From assembly GCF_963853765.1 (NCBI RefSeq), contig NC_088858.1, positions 50,530,001 to 50,594,000 on the forward strand: a stretch of DNA of 64,000 nt, given 5' to 3'. Of the stretch, positions 332 through 47,047 are shown piece by piece (position 1 is the first letter of the stretch; every line of letters starts with the position of its first letter). The notes beneath the pieces are model-generated. The model did no database searches. It was given only the letters and a program-made list of their open reading frames with translations, and was not told where the DNA came from. Origin of the DNA: Magallana gigas (taxonomy: Eukaryota). The position numbers were made by a program, and so were the translations under genes.

Positions 332-863
332 CTGAAATATGAGGTAATGATACAAATGTACAGAGTGTTAAAGTCATCTTAGATTTTAAAAATTTATATA
401 TACCCTAAAAGTGCTCAATTGGTGCAAAATAAGAAAAGATACAGATGAAAAGGTAAAAGTTGGTTTTAGTGAATGTATGAATTTGTAAAATGTAGCTTGA
501 ATGACTTAACAAAATATCTTTCATTTAAAAGATGATGAAAAGCATGTAATTCATATCAGACAAGATAAAAAGAAAGTAAAACTGGAATGCCATGCAAAAA
601 GGTAAATATCAGTTGTTTGAAAAGAATGAGTTAGAAATAAGACAACAATTAATGTAAGTTGAAGTTCTTGAAGTGACAACTGTAACACAAATAACAAAAG
701 AACTAAGAAAACAGAAGATGTCTTGCAGCAGAATGTCAAAACAGGAGAACACAAGTGCATTGAGTAGAGTATGAAATTGGAAAATAGAAATGGTGAAGAG
801 ACACTGATTCATATGCACTAGTTCTGTTTTTGACTTCCCTACAGGACACTGTCTTAGAGGTAC

Positions 864-3800
864 CTCTGCAACATCAATGGTTGAGCCATCAGTGGTGAGG
901 CTGTAGAAGGCATGCAGGAGCTGTTTAAGGGTGGTGTACTCGCAGTCAGCACTGCTCAAAGACTGCCTGATAAACTCAGGATCTCTACTGTACAGCAACT
1001 TCAGAAAGTCCCGTATGGAGGTCACCCTTTTGGGTGGGAGGTTTATCAACTCCTCAGACTCCTCCTGTGACCCATCATCAGACAATGCCTGATAGCTCTG
1101 GTTGGCTGTGACCTCTAAGCTGTCTATGTGAGGGAAGGAAGCAACAGAGGACACAGGATCACTCGGCTCACTCGAATAGCCCTCACTGTTCCTAAAGAAA
1201 AGTGGACTGTCCTTGAACCGCACATCTTTGGCTGGAACTGTATTTGGGTTGTTCAGTTTGTAAATGATTGCACCAGGTTCTGTGTTGATCTCTCTTGCAG
1301 TATATTCTGTCTTATATTTGTGGTATGGTAAAGGAGAAGTTTCCTGAACTTTAAGGGAATTGTTTGATGGCTGCACATGAAAGTTGCACAACTGCATGTT
1401 ACTTCCCATTTCATAAATATCCTTACTCTGACTAGACACTTTCTTCTTTACATCGAAATCCTCATGGCTGTAATAAGATATGAGTTCTTCATCACAGTCA
1501 TCAAGATGACTGCTAGATCTTTGGGAGAAACCTCGCAGTTTTCTGTCCGAGTAAGACTTGCTGAAAGAGGAACTAGAGGGAGTAAACACTTCTAACTCCT
1601 CATCACTGATTGATTCAACTAAAACAGAACTTGGGTTGAGTCTTTTGATCAAATCCCTCGTGTTATTGCATTCCTCTGTTTCCTCCCTGTTGGCAAAACA
1701 AAATCGCCTAGATTCTCTCTCTTCCAACTGATCTTGATCTAAGGTGTTGTTTTCTGTATGAGCACTGGTATCAACACCACTCTCATACCCTTTATCAATG
1801 GAACTATTTGGACTCTCTGTTCTTTCAGTCTTGTCCAGTGGCACCTTTTCTTTTATTACTTTTTCAAGCTTCCTTTTTAAAACTTCTGATGGCAATGAAT
1901 GGTCCTTGTGTTTATGTCCCTGTGCTCTATTAACTAACTTTCCATCCAATGACTTTTTGCTGCTTTGTATCTTGGTGCTTGGTTCTCCCTCTTTAGGTTG
2001 AATCATCATTATATTTTTGGGGGTTGACTTTTCTAAGTTTATTTCGCCTGCTTCATGGAGAGACACAAGAGTACTCAGATCTTCTTCCTTAAGATTTCCT
2101 TTTTGTAAAGACTGTAATATAATTGCTGACACAAGGCTTTGCTTTTGAAGCAAAGCAGATTGTTGATCAAGAGTTGTTTGAAGCAGCAATTTAATGGATT
2201 CAATATCAGGATTCTTTGTGGCAAGTTTTGGGGAATTGTCAATAGCATCAGTAGTGTCAACTCCTTCCTCATTTTCTGGTTCTGCAGTTGGTGAAATACC
2301 AAGACTCTTACTGCCTTCTGTCATTGTACTGTTGATTAACAATGCAGAGGGTCCTTTCTTTTCATTGTTTGGATTCTTAGTTTCCAGTGCTTCCTTATTG
2401 TCTTCCCCTTCTGTACTAGTGTTAATCTTGAGGTTCTCTAGGACTAATGTTGGAGAGTTGAAGTCTACCTCTCCATATCCTTCTCTCTGAATTTCTGTCA
2501 CTGACCTCATTTTCCTCTCTGGTAGGTCCGCTTTTACTACAGTTGTTTGTTGAACTTGTTGATCGACATCAGAATCTTCTCCATGGTTTTCAGAAACAGT
2601 GAGTTCCTTCGAGGATGCTATAGAACTGCTTTCTATACCAGTGGATTCCTTTTCTCTTTGAGGGTAATTCCATTGTTCTAATGCTTCGGGTAATTTGGAT
2701 GATATTGTTTCTTTTGACAAGTCTTGATCACAATTGTCAGGTGGATTTTTTTCTCCCATCATTTTCTGGTTTTCTGCATTTTCATTATCATATTTTTTGA
2801 GAAAATGCTTTGTTTTATTTTTTATTACACTTGGCAGGGATTTGTGGGATCTTTTAAAAGAGTCTTCAAGGGCAAGTTTAGGAGGTTTCCAATTATGATG
2901 AGAGCTAATGTCTAAATCTGACTTTCTTCTTACAGACATAGCAATGTTGGCCTCATCTTCCTCCATTTCTGGAATAACAAGTCTAGAGAGGTTATGAAAA
3001 CTATAGACTCCATAGCCTGGTGTTCTATGGCTAAACTCTGCAGTTTCTTTTTCCAAATGACTTCGTTTCAGTGAATCATCTTTGTTGCCAAGCCCACTGC
3101 CTGACAGGCCAACACCATCTTCTGACATTGTCTTCCTCTTAAGATAACCTGTTTCTGGTCTGTTTTGTTTCCAGGTTTCCTCATTACAAGAATGGCGTCG
3201 GTCTGCCAGCTCTACTGCTGCCTTTTCTTTGAGCATGGTTTTCAGTAAATCACCAGGTATTGCTCCACCTTTCAAACTGCTTCTGCGAGAGTAAGTTGCT
3301 TTCAGTAGTTGTTTTGTAGGTTTCAGGAGGCAAGCATCGGCACTCTCAAACTTAGTACCTGTATCACTATAGTATTTCTGAACTGCCAATTTATAAATCA
3401 TTTTTCTGTTGTTTGGATCTTGCCACTCGGTGCACAAAGGGTCAATATACGTTTTTAGAGCCTCTGGCACTTCAAATGATATCTCATTTGACTCATCTTG
3501 ATTCAGGTCAAAGATTGCCTCTTTGCTTTGCTCTGTTTCTTGATTGGAAATAAACACTGGGTTCTTAAGATAATCATTTTTTTCATTTTTATCTATTGCT
3601 TCCTTAAAAATTTCAGGTGTTTCATTGGCATTCCCAAGCTCTTTGGAAACCTCCTCCAATGATTTCTCTTTATCTGATGCTTTCCTTACTAGCTCTTTTT
3701 CTGATGGAAGCTGTGTCGATGGTCTCTCACCTACTATATCCTTTATATCTCCTTTTTCTGTCAGAACCTCTGATAACTTTTCCATGTCTGACATTTCCAT

Positions 3801-4523
3801 GGCTTGCTCTTTCTCTGGTGGAATTTCAGGTGATGAAGGCTCTGAAATACTTTCTCTGCTTTCTCCTTTCCTTTCTGCATTTGCAGCTTCACTCTCATTC
3901 TCAGCCGCTTCGACTTCATTACTACTACCCACATCAGCAGGTCTGTTAAATTTCCAGAGAGGTTTTGGTTTGGGCTCAGCTTTTCGGGCTGGAGCTCCAT
4001 CAACCCCTGATCCTATATCATGAATATTAATGATGGAGGAATTCACTACATGCTGCCATAGAGAGGACCTACTACTCTGGGAAGTTTCCTGCTTTTTCAA
4101 TGCTGCCCATCTACTAACTTTAGGCGACTTAGGTCTAGCACCTAAAGATAACAGATTTTTTATAGACTGTATCCCAGACCCTCCAGTGCTTGTAGCACTG
4201 CCTTCTAATTTTGTGGCATCTCTTTTGTCAGATTCTGTTGACTGAGAAATACTGGAGCCTATCAATCCCTGTGCCTGTTCATTATCCTTTCTTTCTGTGC
4301 TTTTGGTATTGCTTTCTTTAGAAAACTCTCTTGACTGTTTTGGGGTTGATGTGACAAGGGGAGATAACTCTGCTCTGGAGGATGGAGGTGTGCTGGGAGA
4401 GGCTGGTAAGCTCCCTGCTACCACAGTCTCATCCAAATCTCCTTGTCTGGAATCTTTTTGCATTTTCACACTTTTTGAATCCTTCTGGTCTGTACTGATG
4501 CTTTTGATATTTTCTGATGAAGA
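864..4523 (-). CDS. Giant coding exon (3,660 nt, 1,220 codons) of an uncharacterised Ser/Glu/Lys-rich, predicted disordered protein
   Basis: Covers ORF 609..4469. Acceptor ttctacattAG at 4524-4525 extends the frame (SSSENIK...). Donor GAG|GTACCT at 863-862 makes the length divisible by 3. No recognisable domain. Confidence 0.8.
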
Positions 4524-4746
4524 CTAATGTAGAAGAGTAGAGCAGTGCAGAGTTAATTAAAGCAGACAGGGTGCAATTTGATGAGAAATACATTACAAGG
4601 AAAGAACAGGTTGTGAGAAAATTTGTATGTTTATCAAAATAACTTATTGAATGTCTCTGTGGTTTTGGAGTCTTTTTCATTGAGCAAGGACTACACAGAA
4701 TTATCACTGAGTCACTTTCACCCCACTGTTTTACATGAATACATAC

Positions 4747-4841
4747 AGAGGATGACTCTGCGGCCGCTATGTCAGGGACTGAACCGGTCGTGGGCAGACT
4801 CTCTGTCTGGTTCTTACTGGTATAACCAGAGTCCTCATCAT
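4747..4841 (-). CDS. Coding exon (95 nt) of the same gene
   Basis: Acceptor ttgtttcAG (4842-4843), donor GTATGT (4746-4741); DEDSGYTSKNQTESLPTTGSVPDIAAAESSS; ends phase 0 as the giant exon requires. Confidence 0.7.
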
Positions 4842-5625
4842 CTGAAACAATGTCAAGCATTCAGTGTCACGCTTTCCATCACTTTACACTGTCATCATAA
4901 ATAGCATCAATATAAACCATAAGCTATGCATTTAATAAAAGTGATTTTGTACCTGGTGGATTCAGATCACTCATATTTGCTGTGTAAATCTCATTCCCTG
5001 TATAAAAAAAAAAACAAAAACAAAAACAAGAAAAAAACAACAAAAAACAGTATGAATGTTAATTATTGATATAACAACAAAAGATGGACAATAATCATGA
5101 TAGTTGTGGTCTTTAATACATGAAAATTTCATACAAGTTTTTACCCAAGTTATACAGGTATAATTTGGGATATAACAGTTTACAATTGTGAAGCCAAATG
5201 AATTTAAAATGTAACACAATGTAACAAAAAGATTATTTGAGTGTAATTTGGGTAACAATAATCATTTAAATAAGTTTTTATCATATTATTCTATTTTCTA
5301 CCATTAAATGACAAAATATTTGAAATTATCTTTCAAAAGACAATAAGTTACACAAAATCTAAATGTAACATTAAGCAAATAACAAGATTTTGATGAATGT
5401 CGAATAGCATACTTTTTTAAAATAATGAAATAAAGTAATCTGTTACTGTGGTAACAACCAGTCCTATGATATTTCAAAAATATAATCATCCATGTCAATG
5501 TACTTAATTAATGAATTAATTTAGTACATTTTCCAAATGTTCACAAACAAGAGCATTGAAATTCAACAAATCTATGTACAAATAGCTGCAAATACATGTA
5601 TCGTGAAGTAAACTTATATACCTAC

Positions 5626-5696
5626 TATGTCTGGTTTCCTCTGGAATGCTGTACAGATAGAACTGCTGCGGGGTGTACCAAGTATTCACAGGGCAC
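5626..5696 (-). CDS. Coding exon (71 nt) of the same gene
   Basis: Acceptor atttttcAG (5697-5698), donor GTAGGT (5625-5620); CPVNTWYTPQQFYLYSIPEETRH; ends phase 1, matching the next exon. Confidence 0.6.
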
Positions 5697-7163
5697 CTGA
5701 AAAATAATTACCAGCATGAATTACGAAGTGATTGGAAAATAAAGTATAAGTAGTTTTCCTCAGTAGACTTTCATAAAGTGGATGATCATTCACTAGTACA
5801 CAACTACATACATACATGCATGCATGTAAAACCAAATTAAGTACAACTTTGATCAAATGCATGTTCAAAATGTAAACATGCATGCATGTTTTATATCTAT
5901 CCTTCAGAGAGTAAGATCCAGTCGGAAACCATGGTTATCTAAGTAATATTTATTTTACAAAACCCTAAAACACCATAACATACTTACACGAAAACCGTTG
6001 AGAAATCAACTTTCACCAATTTTTCACAAATTTAGAAAAATAATCATTCCTGCCTGGATTGACCCTATCGTATTCATAGCAAAAGTAAGACAAGTAGAAA
6101 AAATATGGCAACATATGGGGAGGAATAGAGCTGGTGTATAAGGCCATACATAATTGATGTGGAGAGGCTCTGAAGTTAACATTACAGTTCACTCCAGGCC
6201 AGATTGATCATAGATCTACAACAATGCTTGAAGTACCTGTTATTAATCAGCCTAATTAAATATTGATAAAGCAGGAGATAGACATTTCACAGTCATACTG
6301 TAACAACAGTTTTACATACAGGATTATAGCTTACTAGAAAGATGTGTCCCTCAGAATTAATTCCCTCACCCCACTTTTCCCATGGCTTTAATAATAACAC
6401 TAGATTTGATTCACCAACCCTCTCCCCAATTTTTGGTGGATTTTAATAAATCAAAACTATAACTGGAAGAGATATTTTCAAATTGATTTTTTTTTATATT
6501 TTAAGATTTTAAAGAAATTCAGACCAAGTTCACTGAGTACAGATTGCTATATAGGTATATGTAATATATTAATCAAATATAAATGAATGAAATAAAAGCA
6601 ATGAAATTCACACACTATATATAGATTGAAATTGTCACGAAAACTTAAAAGATTTATCATTATGATGTACGTGATATATATATATTTTTTGTAAAATGCA
6701 GTTCAGATTTTTAGCTTGGTATTGTTGAAAGAAAGGTCTTCAGGCTATAGGCATGCAAAATGCAAGTGTTTCTATAAAGAGCACAAAAATGAACAGCAGC
6801 TAAGTAGAAGCTTCCACTATATCAAGTAGTTTCACAGAGAGCCATGTTTTGCCAAATGTATTAAATTGTTTTTTTTAGTGTGTGAATAAATTTAGCAAAG
6901 AATTTGACTTTCTCCATGTGCTTATTTATTACGTGATTAAAAAACAAAATGATGCATTTTGGCACATATAGAATGCGCATGAAATTCCATGAACTACTTA
7001 TACAGGCATTGGTATCCGCTGCACATTGAAGAAATGGAAGTTCGATTCTATGACCCTTGTTTACAATTCAATGCACTGAATTTTTTCTACAAGACAGACA
7101 TATTTTATATAGCTGCTTACAAATTTAGATTCCCTCTGAAGCTTTTCTGACATTAAAAGCATG

Positions 7164-42001: not shown

Positions 42002-43258
42002 TAACCTACATTAAACGTGTACTATGATAAAAATTCGGCATTCGCGATTTTATGTTCTAGCGATTTGATGGAAAACTGCTGAATCGTGGAATTAATTAAG
42101 AACCTGCGTAAAAAAGGAATCAACAGTATGTGGTCTTAATAATAATTTCCTTTCTTTGAAATAAGATTTTTTTTTAATTCGATGTAATTGGTGTAAATAT
42201 TTTAATATCAATGCGCTGTAAAAAAAAAAAAAAAAAAAAGGTGAAGCAGACACCTAAAATTGATAACAAAATATTTCTATAAATCTTCTCCAAATCATAG
42301 CCAAGTTGGAGCATTAAGCTCAGATCGGGAAAAACAGAAATGCATGTTGTTAATCAAATTTGTGTTCAAATGAGGTATGATAAGAGATGATATATAATGA
42401 TGTGAAAATTAGATTTAAAAAAAGGTATAAAAACTAAACGCGATGAAAATGACGCGTTATAAAATTTACGCTTTTCAGACGACGTTATGACGTAACGTCA
42501 TATGTTTGTGACGTTATTTCTCTGTTTTGTAAAAAATGCCATAAGCACCCTTTTCTCATGGACTCAATCATATGTGATTTATAATTTACATATATTTGTG
42601 TAAAAAATGTATTAATATATATATGTAATTTCAGACAATGTGTACACATGTAGGGATGTCAGCCATTATTCTTCACAGCGATCATTTATAGATATATAAT
42701 ACTATTTTATAAAAATCTGATCACTGTAAAGTAAAATGTGTCCAGCTCTAGCCACGTGGAGGCCTCCCTTATATATGGCCTTTTTCCCTGCATATATGTG
42801 TGGATCTCATGTTTTTCAACATCACTGCCACAAATGACCCATGTACGGCTGACTTGGCAGATTGGGAAATCAGCCTCTAACCCGGCGTACAACACAATCT
42901 GGCATAATTTCTCGCTTGTAAACGTGGGACCTCCATACAAAACGGCGGTGACGACTGTCGAGACGAACTGATACGGACTTTCTTTCTAGGTACCGTTTAT
43001 CCTGCCATAGTCCTCTGTGGCACAACATTGTCCAAAACTTTTTATAAGGTCCTTTTCTGCGGTGCTTATTTTTCTTCGAACCTTCTCTGCTTCTTTCTGG
43101 CCACCAAAGCTGCTGATTCTGGTCGCTCATGACAAACGGCCTACAAAAACAGTCGGGGCACTCAAAATGTCCATCTGTAGGCAGTATGATACATGTATAA
43201 CGATGTTCAGTCACGGGATGTTCTTGATCAGACTCATGCTCGGGGTCCTAGTTCCAAT

Positions 43259-44649
43259 CACAGGTGCTTGTGGACTGGACCGTGCACTACCCCCACCCCC
43301 CCCCCTTTTTTTCTATATTTTTTTTCAAATTTTTTTTTTTATTTCTTTTATTAATTATCATTAACAACCCCTTATATATGTCTCCAGCCGAAAAATAAAA
43401 GAAATATCACGACTTGGTAGCATTTTATAATCACACTCGTTTCCCCTATATATATAAAGAGAGAAGGTAAGCAACTCCCGTTTGTTTACATTGAGGTACT
43501 ACCTGGGAAATTCAAACGATTACTATATCAAAAATCGCTATACCTTTGGTGTCATCTATTTTTCTCACTTCCACACATATCCTTCTATCTGAAAACTTAT
43601 ATAAATTAGCACGCTGAACCGTAATCTATCCAACTAATAAACATTTGTCACTCGCGACCACGATATTTTGAAACGTTCCAAGTAGAAGCTACGGAAGTTA
43701 GCTGCACAGCGACATCTATGCTAAGAACGATAACTCTTCCCGTGTTCCGAATGTCATTGACTTAACGGTAACGCACGAGAGGCCCGAAAAAAAGTTCGGG
43801 AAAAGTTTTAGATTAAATGCAAAATTTCAGCATTTGAATATCTGCCGTCTTCTATGCCAGCCCACCTATGAAGTGTCTGGGCTTTCAAATCCTGGTAATG
43901 TGTTGCTGCAATGCCTGTAGAGCAAACTATTGATACTTCTTTTTTTTTGAGTATACCTAATGTGTTTTGCAATTTTTTAGTTATGTATGTTTTGCCTGTC
44001 CCAGCTTGGCCAGTGATGACCAAGTTATGGCCATTAATTGCTTCTTGAAAGGTAAACAATTGATCTACATCCATTTTCTTAAATATTGCACTAAAACTTT
44101 TCCCGAACTTTTTTTCGGGCCTCTCGTGCGTTACCGTTAAGTCAATGACATTCGGAACACGGGATGAGTTATCGTTCTTAGCATAGATGTCGCTGTGCAG
44201 CTAACTTCCGTAGCTTCTACTTGAAACGTTTCAAAATATCGTGGTCGCGAGTGACAAATGTTTATTAATTGGATAGATTACGGTTCAGCGTGCTAATCTA
44301 TATAAGTTTTCAGATAGAAGGATATGTGTGGAAGTGAGAAAAATAGATGACACCAAAGGTATAGCGATTTTTGATATAGTAATCGTTTGAATTTCCCAGG
44401 TAGTACCTCAATGTAAACAAACGGGAGTTGCTTACCTTCTCTCTTTATATATATAGGGGAAACGAGTGTGATTATAAAATGCTACCAAGTCGTGATATTT
44501 CTTTTATTTTTCGACTGGAGACATATATAAGGGGTTGTAAATGATAATTAATAAAAGAAATAAAAAAAAATTGAAAAAAAAAATATTTAAAAAGGAGGGG
44601 CGGGGGGGGGGGGGGGGGTAGTGCACGGTCCAGTCCACAAGCACCTGTG
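43259..44649. mobile_element. Fold-back DNA element: ~555-bp TIRs, 279-bp spacer, 8-bp TSD GTTCCAAT
   Basis: 43259-43811 is the reverse complement of 44091-44649; termini CACAGG..CCTGTG; TSD at 43251-43258 and 44650-44657. Confidence 0.9.
43808..44074 (-). pseudogene. N-terminal fragment of a Pif1-family (SF1B) DNA helicase
   Basis: Walker A ITGQAGTGKT, motif Ia CSTGIAA, motif Ib TLHRWAGI; truncated at the left arm. Confidence 0.85.
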
Positions 44650-47047
44650 GTTCCAATCATAAAAGGCAAATAAGGCATGAATCGCAGCTAACTTTTCCTC
44701 GGAAAGACGGACACTTACTTTCGTAGTCATGTTGTATGGATTTCTCTCAAACAAATGAACAAATGCACTCACACTCAAACATTCTGTAAAATTTAATTAT
44801 GAAATAATTACGTACTCATCATTATCGCGTTACACAATCATTTTGTCGCGAGACGGACGATCGGAAATGATTTTTGGAAGTAAAAAACTACAACAATAAA
44901 CTGGAGACATTATCATGTTCTATCATCCCTGTAAATTTCAGGAAAATCTATTTAGTCATCTTTGAGATATTCTACAGAAAAAGAAAAGGAGGGGGGATAA
45001 AAAGAAAGAAAGAAAACACTACAATCACTATAATGTCTTACGTTGGAAACAGAAGACATTTATGAAAAGAAAAAAGAAAGAAAGAAAGAAAAGGATCTTC
45101 TGTTGGAAACGGAAGACTTTAAGAAAGAAAAAAACACTACAGTCACTATAAATCACTTTTATACAATATTTCTTCTATTGGACCTTTTCCAAGCAGTAAA
45201 TTTATTTGATAGTTTACAACCACAATCTAATTAAAATTAGACTTTCTGAATCCACTGGTTTTAATGTCACCTCTTTAGTACAGAGAGTGTTTACCATATA
45301 ATATATCCCCCCCCCTTTTATCTGATGAAAACCATTCTGGAATATCCCAGTCATTGTCTACTTCTTTATCTTGTTCAACCGATTCCTTGTCAATCATGAC
45401 AAAGTCGAAATCATTATTATCACTTAAACTTGAGCCTTAATATTCATTATTATTGACATCAAGATCAACACTCTCTTGTACTAACTGATATACTCATTCC
45501 TTTTGAAGATTATAAATGCATCCAATAATGTCATTTATTCCCATCATTTCTTTGAATTATATCTTTATTATCCATATTCAAAATTGCGTCATTACCAAAA
45601 ATATCCTTTTTATTTTTAATCGCTTTTGTTGCATTATTTTGAAATAAATTTTTACGTTTGCCACCTGCTTTACATGCCGAAGACGGCTTCGCCAATCGAA
45701 GTTTTTGCCCTTGTTTATCATCATTCTCTACTGCAGAACCTGCAGTTGACCTTATTTCATTCATTTCGAGGCGAGTCTTTTTTGAACCATTTGTTGAGAA
45801 AAGTTTGAATTCTACTCATTGAAGTTGTAACTTTGCCTCAAAATAGGGTACCCTATTTTTATCATCAGTCGGCATGTGATCTATTTTTAGAACAAGAAAA
45901 ATCCAGTCTATACTTAGAACTCCTGTGTCTATGGATATACACAAACATAAAAAAAATTGTCAATTCCAAACAATCTGTTTTGAATTTGAAATACATCTAT
46001 ATACCTGTACCACGTTTGTTTTATAGAAATTTTAAAAATTCTATAAGTATAAATTAAAGTAAATTTTTTTAAAAAGTGGGATAGGGGTCCAAAAAGTGAT
46101 TGTCTTACATTAAAAAAGTATACATAATATTTCAATAAAAATGTTTCTGCAATGTACTTCCATTGACACTGACAAATATATCTTGTGGTTTTTGAGGCCC
46201 ATTTTAAGAATAGGGTACCTTACTTTGAGACAAAGGTACAACTTAAATGAGCAAACTTTTTCTCATCAAATGGTTATAGAGAGGACATCAATAAACCTCC
46301 TTCATATTTGTTCAGATTTTTTTAATTTTCAAAATAAGTCTGTAGCTGCACGGTTTGACAGCTGTTTTGAGTTGTTAAATAGGCACTAGACTTTGACATT
46401 TACAGAACCAAGCTTTAAGCCTACAACACTCTGCTTAGTTAGAATAAACTAACTGTGTCTCGGGACAGGCCTTCACCACAGTTAAAATGCCTCCCATATA
46501 CCCGTAATGTAGCAAAAAATTGCAGAATCGCTCCGAAACGATTTTGGAGAAAATGAAGCTGCATATAAAATAACAGTCATATTATGTATAACAAACCATT
46601 TTGAGGCTGTGAATACCTTTCATCTAAAAAATTAAATCATATTATTGAAGAATTCAACACTTTTTAATAATAAACGCAAAATTAATACTACATGCATATG
46701 TATGCTCCAGAGTATTCCCATTATATGATGTGTCTCTTAAAAGTTCCTACTTCGGACTCGTCCACTATAACGGTGCGTAAAAGTCAATGACTGAGACATC
46801 CCGGCGCGACGACGTTTAGAGAGAGGGCTTAATAAGTTATGGAACTTGTGCCCAATCATATTGTGTAAATATACAATAAAACATTTCAAACCAAACCAAC
46901 GAAGTCCTATTTTACCTTTTGTATTAATGAAATTTTTATTGGTAATAGTATATTCTTCCATGGGGGTGGAGTTGGAGTATCAAATCAATTAAATTGTTCT
47001 CGCTAGTCAAGATGTTCTCAAGTTGTATTTATGCTGCAGTGTGTATA

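Follow-up and report, generated by a model that had tools for sequence, protein, structure and literature searches.

In a 64,000-nucleotide stretch of the Magallana gigas genome (referred to here as the window), two long inverted arms enclose the 5' end of a Pif1 helicase gene. What kind of mobile element has this structure, and how does a helicase gene come to lie in it? A sequence-only reading of the window had proposed that the element derives, by internal deletion, from a cut-and-paste family with a Pif1 gene of its own, with capture of the gene by a Pack-type element as the alternative. The follow-up analysis favored the former: the window element is very probably a nonautonomous, internally deleted copy of a ~6.9-kb P-superfamily transposon that encodes its own Pif1 helicase.

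Window element and insertion site

By direct reading, positions 43259-44649 constitute an element of exactly 1,391 bp with the termini CACAGGTG...CACCTGTG. The 8-bp target site duplication (TSD) GTTCCAAT directly flanks it on both sides. The features of the locus are as follows.

42870..43250, minus strand: downstream part of the interrupted open reading frame (ORF); preceded by an in-frame TAG (TGG in the paralogue); the upstream part is at 44658-~44800
43251..43258, no strand: left TSD copy GTTCCAAT, by direct reading; the paralogous empty site spans the rebuilt junction
43259..43809, plus strand: left arm, 551 bp, equal to full-element positions 6399-6949 in inverted orientation, which form the transposase-side terminal inverted repeat (TIR); terminus CACAGGTG, with poly-C and poly-T runs close to it and, at 43446-43459, a TATATATA box
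43783..43800, no strand: small hairpin CCCGAA-N6-TTCGGG close to the inner edge of the left arm; its position in full copies is immediately before the start of the transposase gene
43810..43811, no strand: two-nucleotide filler at the deletion junction, AG on the plus strand and CT on the Pif1 strand; common to all ~1.35-1.39-kb copies
43812..44074, minus strand: remnant of the Pif1 helicase gene, first ~88 codons, equal to full-element positions ~567-837
44075..44090, minus strand: 16-nt leader from the inner edge of the arm to the Pif1 ATG, from sequence reading and arm alignment
44091..44649, minus strand: right arm, the Pif1-side TIR; starts at 44083 when gapped; inner hairpin at 44102-44119; terminus CACCTGTG
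44650..44657, no strand: right TSD copy GTTCCAAT, by direct reading

Rereading the sequence upheld the proposed element with its 8-bp TSD and a 279-bp center holding the Pif1 ATG and three motifs, together with the CAC..GTG termini, the CCCGAA/TTCGGG hairpins at the inner arm ends, and the 16-nt offset of the ATG. The central 279 bp contains an 88-codon ORF on the minus strand (43808-44074) that matches PF05970 (PIF1, E = 5e-9) and includes a Walker A motif (GQAGTGKT), motif Ia, and TLHRWAGI. Its ATG is at 44072-44074, inward from the arm edge at 44091, and the filler and the two preceding T's make up its TAA stop. The long inverted arms are real, but the proposed identity of ~99% was too high: gapped BLAST placed the arms at 43259-43809 (551 bp) and 44083-44649 (567 bp), with 97.9% substitution identity and 18 gap columns, and ungapped alignment covered 522 nt at 96%. 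Apart from T-runs, the arm has no internal repeat family; it consists of unique sequence, with no tandem subrepeats.

The 8-bp TSD had originally been deduced from the restored reading frame of the interrupted gene. When the element and one TSD copy were removed, the minus-strand frame did continue across the join, but it met a TAG stop one codon past the TSD. Better proof of a precise insertion with an 8-bp TSD comes from a paralogue (L037, at C6:38.296 Mb), which aligns unbroken over the rebuilt empty site and has TGG in place of TAG. The ORF interrupted by the window element is itself disabled. A Pfam search with this host ORF gave no match; it may resemble a P2X7-type ballast domain.

Full-length copies and their two genes

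Longer two-arm copies with a full Pif1 gene and a transposase were looked for and found. Two copies of 6.9 kb (L031 and L032) each carry two convergent genes, one for a P-element/THAP9-type transposase and the other for a Pif1 helicase. From left to right, they consist of a TIR, a rightward gene whose product joins a Pif1 helicase to a helical domain and a PHD finger, a leftward P-type transposase gene, and the second TIR, with each gene starting within about 20-80 nt of the TIR inner edge. The encoded domains are PIF1, Pif1_2B, PHD, and TNP-like_RNaseH_N. Both 6.9-kb copies of this family (family A) in the assembly are frameshifted, and family A may therefore no longer be autonomous in the sequenced individual.

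The same convergent transposase/helicase pair occurs in at least four divergent families of the oyster genome (A, B, C, and D), which are only 32-47% identical. The family-B element measures ~8.8 kb, its TIRs are 190 bp long, and its TSD is TGATATAG; both of its ORFs (780 and 1,031 amino acids [aa]) are intact, and a second copy is 99.4% identical. TSDs are 8 bp in two mini-MITEs and 7-8 bp in family D. Outside the oyster genome, the two genes were shown to be adjacent in only two, independent contigs. In one (L053; 8.85 kb, with TIRs of ≥260 bp), the two genes are full-length and converge; in the other (L056), the 3' ends of both genes are present and converge, with ~40% identity. Equally long source contigs hint at linkage in P0019/P0037, P0007/P0044, and P0026/P0045.

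A profile of 14 transposase sequences, searched against the PDB, matched the Drosophila P transposase alone (6P5A, E = 1.5e-12), in three colinear segments that correspond to the HTH, the GBD, and the C-terminal part of the RNase H with E531. A single-sequence phmmer search of the PDB with the family-A transposase piece returned nothing useful. PF21787 was found in all 14 transposases and PF21788 in 4 of them (best E = 8e-6). The transposases have a P-type HTH and a split RNase H with conserved D, D, DxxH, and E motifs; D515 and H518 are invariant, and in all families DPCH, DPSH, or DFSH is followed by hydrophobic-KK-x-RN. The profile also covers the stretch from the second Asp to the Glu, where it aligns with residues 319-408 of 6P5A; by homology, this insertion domain is of the GTP-binding type, with GTP binding itself predicted. 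The TSDs of families A, B, and D and of the mini-MITEs are within the 7-8 bp of the P superfamily. Judged by these sequence matches, the family is a member of the P superfamily. The hAT superfamily was rejected as a candidate: TSD length alone fits, and Pfam gave P-type domains and no hAT domains.

Two domains of the P transposase were missing. No THAP domain was detected by Pfam (E up to 0.1) in any of the 14 transposases, and in family A an upstream exon would have no space. The THAP domain may be replaced by a conserved cluster of Cys residues (C172, C211, C224, and C227 in family B numbering). At the other end, the transposases terminate ~65-80 residues past the start of the catalytic-Glu motif and thus have no C-terminal domain (CTD); none of the 14 matched the PF12596-type alpha-helical CTD.

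The helicase protein matches PF05970 (E = 1e-33) and Pif1_2B and has motifs I, Ia, II, III, IV, V, and VI as well as the 2B domain of the Pif1 (SF1B) family; the Pif1 motifs are kept across taxa. Over the whole domain, its nearest solved relatives are yeast PIF1 (E = 2e-72) and human PIF1 (E = 1e-58). This type of protein is present in mussels, scallop, pearl oyster, ark clam, and acorn worms (named carriers are Mytilus, Pinctada, Tegillarca, Pecten, Ptychodera, and Glandiceps). Its helical domain was matched by 1,347 clusters (50% identity), with Pif1 and PHD as the sole domain partners.

We modeled the helical sub-domain (pLDDT, 90.5; pTM, 0.82) and compared it with 48,161 solved chains. The best structural match was the CTD of the P transposase (6p5a_B residues 617-734; rmsd, 3.1; 118/118 residues aligned), at a Z of 9.5; according to the note of the structure-search tool, chance alone can produce values of this size with helical models. 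The CTD was the sole match at a Z of ≥8 (runner-up, 7.1). Profile searches of the PDB and Pfam at E values up to 10 gave no P-CTD signal for this domain. Foldseek against the PDB matched only PHD fingers with the 592-aa model and nothing with the 231-aa sub-domain, and the ESM Atlas gave no usable match. In the P transposase, the CTD contacts DNA (PMC7776569). Going by the structural comparison, the DNA-binding tail domain missing from the transposase seems to reside in the helicase protein.

These observations allow a broader reading, which we hold with less than even confidence. The oyster families would belong to an old, undescribed P lineage that occurs in molluscs and probably also in hemichordates and has a transpososome of two proteins, the CTD having moved from the transposase to the convergent Pif1-PHD protein. 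The helicase would be an obligatory docked subunit for single-stranded ends or donor-gap repair, reading histone tails for targeting. One way in which the CTD could have been transferred is that the 3' end of the transposase gene was inverted onto the 3' end of the adjoining helicase gene. In the favored explanation itself, the family transposase probably recognizes the CACAGG termini and cuts out and pastes the short element in trans, and both inward-facing genes probably use the identical long TIRs as their promoter and leader. There, the Pif1 protein would be the second transpososome subunit, docking via the CTD-like domain, and may melt the transposon ends or promote donor-restoring gap repair (SDSA/BIR-type synthesis). 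The PHD finger and the basic stretch preceding it may anchor this protein to chromatin and the target DNA.

Alternatively, the Pif1-PHD gene could be a passenger that was captured once from the host and serves a role other than transposition (e.g., countering silencing) or none, its likeness to the CTD being a coincidence of how helices pack. We regard this as unlikely, if less so than the other alternatives. The helicase domain is nearest to cellular PIF1, nothing at the sequence level links the helical domain to the P CTD, and one further outside contig (L054) has a helicase-type gene but, within 4 kb of it, no transposase, all of which would suit a passenger. A co-fold of the transposase core (residues 250-780) with the CTD-like domain scored 0.00 without controls and counts neither way on binding. 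A passenger, however, is difficult to reconcile with the persistence of the pairing and the convergent layout in such divergent families and in the outside contigs or with the intactness of both ORFs in the nearly identical family-B copies. Furthermore, the helical domain is found solely with Pif1 and PHD, and its unique top structural match is the very domain absent from the neighboring transposase.

Origin and spread of the short form

A search of the 564-Mb oyster genome with the arm gave at least 45 matches, and dispersed copies lie on at least eight chromosomes. Tabulation of the TSDs showed that 15 of 18 family-A copies, including both 6.9-kb copies, have a perfect 8-bp TSD, all different. 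An arm that is a dispersed repeat with a different 8-bp TSD at each locus excludes chance. The short element is colinear with the two 6.9-kb copies save for one 5.56-kb deletion (positions 838-6398). Every ~1.35-1.39-kb copy has the same junction, with full-element position 837 joined to 6399 and a CT filler, which points to a single origin of the short form; pairwise identity among short copies is 96.4-99.1%. One deletion thus removed 5.56 kb and left both ~550-bp TIRs and the first 88 Pif1 codons, and the deleted form then spread by transposition to at least a dozen loci, each with its own 8-bp TSD. The window copy is an ordinary dead (noncoding) internal-deletion derivative of a P-superfamily lineage. 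By analogy with Drosophila P elements, such internal deletions may be by-products of aborted gap repair.

The colinearity with L031 and L032 and the full genes in these copies support the derivation suggested by the sequence-only reading and leave its Pack-type alternative very improbable. In that scenario, a fold-back MITE would have taken up a host PIF1 fragment unrelated to any autonomous partner, and the window copy, with only a 5' gene fragment, could give that impression. The fragment, however, lines up with the 5' part of the complete helicase gene carried by 6.9-kb copies of the same family, from which the short form is separated by one deletion. We reject capture because the helicase gene is complete and conserved together with the transposase across the 32-47%-identical families and in other taxa.

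A still smaller probability attaches to a local inverted duplication or an assembly artifact that is not mobile. Differences in homopolymer length between the arms can be read as sequencing noise, but the arms are not single copy as such an origin would imply: copies occur on several chromosomes with different perfect TSDs, the same sequence is present in runs from eight studies, and a paralogous empty site exists. An equally negligible chance remains for a rolling-circle (Helitron/Helentron) transposon that is marked by Pif1 and gained inverted ends, since despite many Helentron-size ORFs (2,000-2,900 aa) in the genome with helicases 29-36% identical to that of the element, none of the helicase proteins has a Rep/HUH or Helitron_like_N domain, similarity to Helraiser (E = 1e-13) is far weaker than to cellular PIF1, and the element has TIRs, 8-bp TSDs, and an adjoining DDE transposase.

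RNA runs covered the element. In these runs, the helicase strand is transcribed and spliced, and its transcripts run antisense through the transposase gene, with canonical plus-strand introns within the transposase region. The junction of the short form was found in poly(A) reads. The reads showed no transcription start in the TIR, and the one stranded poly(A) run covering the interior had no transposase-sense reads. A candidate intron within the TIR (GTAAGC...TTTTAG) was dropped, as no such joint occurred in the reads. Long perfect hairpins appear to feed RNA editing and antisense transcription.

Related systems and implications

The Drosophila P element (6P5A) shares with the oyster element a cut-and-paste DDE transposase with an HTH, a split RNase H, and a GTP-binding-type insertion domain, an 8-bp TSD, and a preponderance of internally deleted, nonautonomous copies over full copies. 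Its TIRs are 31 bp long, compared with ~550 bp in the oyster element. The latter also differs in having no detectable THAP domain, no transposase CTD, and an extra convergent gene for a Pif1 helicase, helical domain, and PHD finger, with both genes starting at the TIR edges. In Galileo, the TIRs are internally repetitive and bind the THAP domain, the TSD is 7 bp, and there is a single gene and no helicase. The oyster TIRs, unlike those of Galileo, are free of internal tandem repeats. With Galileo, the P superfamily already had a long-TIR member. Galileo and 1360/Hoppel of Drosophila resemble the oyster element in having a P-type transposase, fold-back-like TIRs of hundreds of base pairs, and many two-arm deletion derivatives. 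Reports on these long-TIR elements are PMC3573991, PMC3688188, and PMC4168063.

Helitrons and Helentrons, which are abundant in the oyster genome, likewise encode a Pif1-family (SF1B) helicase, but theirs is fused to a Rep/HUH endonuclease, and they have no TIRs, TSD, or DDE transposase. The short oyster copies, with two long inverted arms and a short center, are similar in form to Foldback (FB). FB arms consist of tandem subrepeats, and its TSD is 9 bp. With its arms of unique sequence, 8-bp TSD, and P-type autonomous partner, the oyster element falls outside FB. Within the Kolobok superfamily, KolobokH and Kolobok-1_CCri carry a RecQ helicase (PMC9587614). They are likewise a DDE cut-and-paste lineage defined by an accessory helicase, which in Kolobok-1_CCri is on the complementary strand (PMC9587614). 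They differ in superfamily, in their 4-bp TTAA TSD, in having a RecQ (SF2) rather than a Pif1 (SF1B) helicase that lacks a PHD finger or transposase-derived domain, and in occurring in fungi and a red alga, not animals. A search of the literature found no paper on a pairing of P and Pif1 or on an accessory helicase in the P superfamily, and a P lineage with Pif1 is apparently undescribed.

Accessory helicases are thus known from Kolobok (RecQ) and Helitrons (Rep-Hel). Here, a cut-and-paste lineage has kept a complete cellular-type Pif1 helicase and a histone-reading finger over long evolutionary distances, and the DNA-contacting tail domain of the transposase appears to have moved onto the helicase. 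Family B, which is intact and has two copies 99.4% identical to each other, could suit a transposition assay in a bivalve, with the short fold-back or a 98-bp mini-element as the substrate. The apparent link of the hairpins to RNA editing and antisense transcription bears on the silencing of transposable elements in oysters. If the helicase is a true subunit, the lineage would offer a handle on how the 17-nt staggered cut and the looped single-strand ends of P elements arise and are handled, and it would exemplify the natural transfer of a domain from one protein of a mobile element to the other.

Window element and its short-form family

Direct reading of the window returned the same element coordinates and target site duplication (TSD) that the sequence-only reading had claimed. 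The element belongs to family A, and its terminal inverted repeats (TIRs) are called arms here.

Features of the window element and the interrupted ORF (window positions)
43259-44649: window element, 1,391 bp, starting CACAGGTG and ending CACCTGTG
43251-43258 and 44650-44657: 8-bp TSD GTTCCAAT, flanking the element
43259-43809 and 44083-44649: arms, gapped alignment
43808-44074, minus strand: 88-codon ORF in the 279-bp center, matching PF05970 PIF1 (E 5e-9)
42870-43250 and 44658-44800, minus strand: interrupted ORF, with an in-frame TAG where the paralogue L037 has TGG

The arms pair ungapped over 522 nt at 96%. Their near-identity stands, although the figure is slightly lower than the ~99% outside homopolymers given earlier (97.9% when only substitutions are counted; another 18 alignment columns contain gaps, mainly in homopolymers). 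Just inside the termini (43283-43345 and 44560-44620), long runs of poly-C/poly-G and poly-T/poly-A vary in length between arms and copies and are the source of most arm-to-arm gaps. The small CCCGAA/TTCGGG hairpins are present at the inner ends of both arms, and the spacer holds the 5' end of a Pif1 helicase as described; this remnant is most likely inert. The TSD had also been argued from a restored reading frame. Once the element and one TSD are removed, the same minus-strand frame does lie on either side, but a TAG follows one codon past the TSD. L037, a paralogue without the insertion elsewhere on the same chromosome, aligns unbroken over the rebuilt junction, which indicates a clean empty site, with the interrupted ORF itself disabled in the window. 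This ORF had no Pfam matches. Fragments 67 to 86% identical to it occur on chromosomes C6, C9, C2, and C5, and it may therefore itself belong to a repeat.

Searching the genome (564 Mb; 29 contigs, ten of them large) with one arm gave at least 45 matches, which were spread over most chromosomes and tended to be paired ~279 bp apart, so the arm is multicopy rather than single copy. Perfect 8-bp TSDs, all different, flank 15 of the 18 elements delimited by their termini; the exceptions are a chance terminus match (an artifact), a TSD offset by one base, and a truncated element. All ~1.35- to 1.39-kb copies consist of blocks 1-837 and 6399-6949 of the 6.9-kb copies, with two identical filler bases. 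Because this junction and filler are common to every short copy, a single 5.56-kb deletion gave rise to the short form, which went on to transpose repeatedly. The earlier suggestion of an internal-deletion derivative of a family encoding its own Pif1 was thus correct. Short copies are pairwise 96.4 to 99.1% identical (mean, 97.6%), implying that the burst was not very recent. Other family-A derivatives measure 605, 800, 1,825, 2,464, and 2,606 bp. At 15 family-A insertion sites (L001-L035), the second base past the TSD is A in 11 and the third is G in 8, so the flank often reads TAG or CAG; this could reflect a weak target preference, the sample being small (n = 15).

Full-length copies and the helicase-transposase pairing

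Longer copies with both arms around a full Pif1 and a transposase had been anticipated, and L031 and L032 are such copies (6.9 kb, chromosome 2, 97.8% identical, each with a separate 8-bp TSD). Their two genes are convergent. One codes for a helicase of the Pif1 type whose C terminus is extended over a long stretch and finishes with a PHD finger; the ATG of this gene lies 10 to 18 nt inside the inner edge of the left TIR. The product of the other contains PF21787, the RNase H N-domain of P transposases, and the first ATG of that gene is ~60 to 80 nt inside the inner edge of the right TIR. Both assembled copies carry frameshifts. Reads from other oysters lack the extra 4 nt of L031 at 5469 and at 1717 and have an extra C at 4229; these are the points where the L031 frames break, so the defects belong to L031 alone.

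With either protein as the genome query, the other was found a few kilobases off and convergent at more than 12 loci. The paired loci span families just 29 to 47% identical in protein; the pairing characterizes a lineage and is not fortuitous. Besides family A, three divergent families share this layout, and CACAGG termini are common to all four.

Families B to D and their derivatives
Family B, C10 and C1: ~8.8 kb; 190-bp TIRs; TSD TGATATAG; intact ORFs of 780 and 1,031 aa; copies 99.4% identical
Family C, four copies: left-end TIR ~320 bp; ~99.5% identical; transposase intact, helicase gene broken
Family D, locus L041: 365-bp TIRs; TSD 7-8 bp
L040:4050-4147: family-B two-arm mini-derivative, 98 bp, 8-bp TSD ATATACAA
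L042:977-1114: family-C two-arm mini-derivative, 138 bp, 8-bp TSD CACTGTAT

The 98-bp derivative is nested in a family-B copy and absent from the 99.4%-identical sister copy, which marks it as a recent insertion. Outside this genome, contig L053 (8.85 kb) is bounded on either side by TIRs of 260 bp or more; between them lie a full-length helicase gene (55% identity) and a full-length transposase gene (62%), again convergent. In contig L056 (2.3 kb), the 3' ends of both genes stand face to face (~40% identity). Protein matches place transposase relatives in Mytilus and Pinctada and helicase-type relatives in Mytilus, Pinctada, Tegillarca, Pecten, and the acorn worms Ptychodera and Glandiceps. 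A further outside contig, L054 (JYMV01015953.1), carries a helicase-helical-PHD gene, and the 4.2 kb that follow it contain no transposase. This gene could either stand alone or belong to a derivative lacking the transposase.

P-type transposase and a CTD-like domain on the helicase

[quoted passage not shown] PF21787 was found in all 14 and PF21788 in 4, and the Asp (two), DxxH, and Glu motifs are all conserved. Pfam detected no THAP domain among the 14; a conserved Cys cluster may replace it. The proteins end ~65 to 80 residues past the start of the Glu motif, whereas the fly enzyme continues for ~225 more, and they thus have no C-terminal domain (CTD). On the basis of the catalytic core, insertion domain, DxxH motif, and TSD, with THAP and transposase CTD missing, we file the element as a divergent P-superfamily lineage. 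It works like the P element but has no detectable THAP domain and no CTD on its transposase. Long TIRs are already known in the superfamily, in Galileo (PMC3573991, PMC3688188).

The N-terminal 440 residues of the partner protein form a complete Pif1 helicase with every motif present. This domain resembles PIF1 of yeast and human (E 2e-72 and 1e-58) more than it does Helraiser, the Helitron enzyme (1e-13). P-borne helicases are 35 to 47% identical between families, against 29 to 36% to the genome's many Helentron-size ORFs. Dozens of the latter occur in the genome, unbroken and 2,000 to 3,200 aa long (e.g., C9:35,724,087, C6:10,412,419, and C4:54,315,013); they are probably intact Helentron/Helitron genes. 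The C-terminal PHD finger, preceded by a basic stretch, has its best structural matches in the H3K4-methyl readers Pygo, BPTF, TAF3, and AL1. Between helicase and PHD finger lie ~450 all-helical residues that matched no Pfam family. A profile of this region hit 1,347 clusters among 1.84 billion representatives, and the only accompanying domains on the 50 longest matches were Pif1 and PHD.

In a structural search of 48,161 solved chains, independent of Foldseek, the single outstanding non-PHD match (Z 9.6) was to the alpha-helical CTD of the Drosophila P transposase (residues 617-734). Refolded alone from a 57-sequence alignment (pLDDT 90.5; pTM 0.82), the sub-domain matched the same residues at Z 9.5 (rmsd 3.1 Å; 118/118 residues aligned), the sole match with Z of at least 8 among the 48,161 chains (next, 7.1), although by the search tool's own account such values are attainable by chance for helical models. 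Profile searches of PDB and Pfam gave no sequence-level link to the P CTD. That the top match of 48,161 should be the very domain missing from the neighboring transposase is difficult to ascribe to coincidence, and the helical domain is probably a true CTD equivalent. In the P transposase, the CTD hangs on a disordered linker, lies between one subunit's RNase H domain and the other subunit's GBD, touches the single strand looped out at the transposon end, and directs a basic tail at target DNA (PMC7776569).

Transcription, proposed mechanism, and significance

Six RNA runs contained 25 to 48% of the element's sampled words. In polyA run X21, the L031 interior (2193-6992) is covered only by pairs with the first mate on the minus strand; no transposase-sense reads were seen there in the ~1% of the run read. 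Two introns with canonical plus-strand sites (AG/GTATGT...CAACAG/ and GG/GTGAGA...TTCTAG/) are spliced inside the transposase region. Mate orientation and introns together indicate that the helicase-sense transcript continues antisense through the transposase gene.

Antisense RNA features of L031
5052-5402 and 5578-6651, plus strand: introns, both lengths multiples of three
4900-6730 (C2:45,364,8xx-45,366,6xx), plus strand: helicase-sense RNA antisense to the transposase gene

The short-form junction also occurs in polyA reads (eight in X21 and two in X22). Joints that run backward in L031 (6723->4902 and 6723->2306) land on CAG acceptors, and a three-exon piece (4902-5049, 5401-5576, and 6651-6723) has ~3-fold the depth of the rest in two total-RNA runs. 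The joints could come from circular RNA made by back-splicing, which base pairing between the 550-bp arms would favor, or from rearranged copies carried by other oysters. Six X21 polyA reads have a loose end at L031:1494-1523 (inner TIR; window ~43770-43800); its 30-nt consensus differs from the element at eight positions, all A to G, out of 14 A's. The pattern looks like ADAR-type hyper-editing of hairpin RNA.

The data show a P-type catalytic core, an 8-bp TSD, a conserved two-gene layout, and a short form that was founded by one deletion and then spread in trans. The transposase would bind the CACAGG ends whether a copy is full or short, and the identical TIRs would drive both inward genes. 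P transposase cuts with a 17-nt stagger; the Pif1 protein might enter the transpososome through its CTD-like domain, and its 5'-3' SF1B motor may aid end melting. Alternatively, the motor could drive D-loop synthesis, by which the donor gap is repaired from the sister chromatid. Such synthesis is a known role of cellular Pif1, and internally deleted P elements are classically traced to incomplete gap repair; the filler-bearing junction of the short form is consistent with such repair.

Among DDE transposons, the closest earlier example of an accessory helicase is KolobokH (PMC9587614), where the helicase is RecQ; here, it is Pif1. We found no report of a P-Pif1 pairing in the literature searched. 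The sequence-only reading had described a real feature and interpreted it correctly. As a copy, the window element is ordinary; the lineage from which it comes merits specialist attention.
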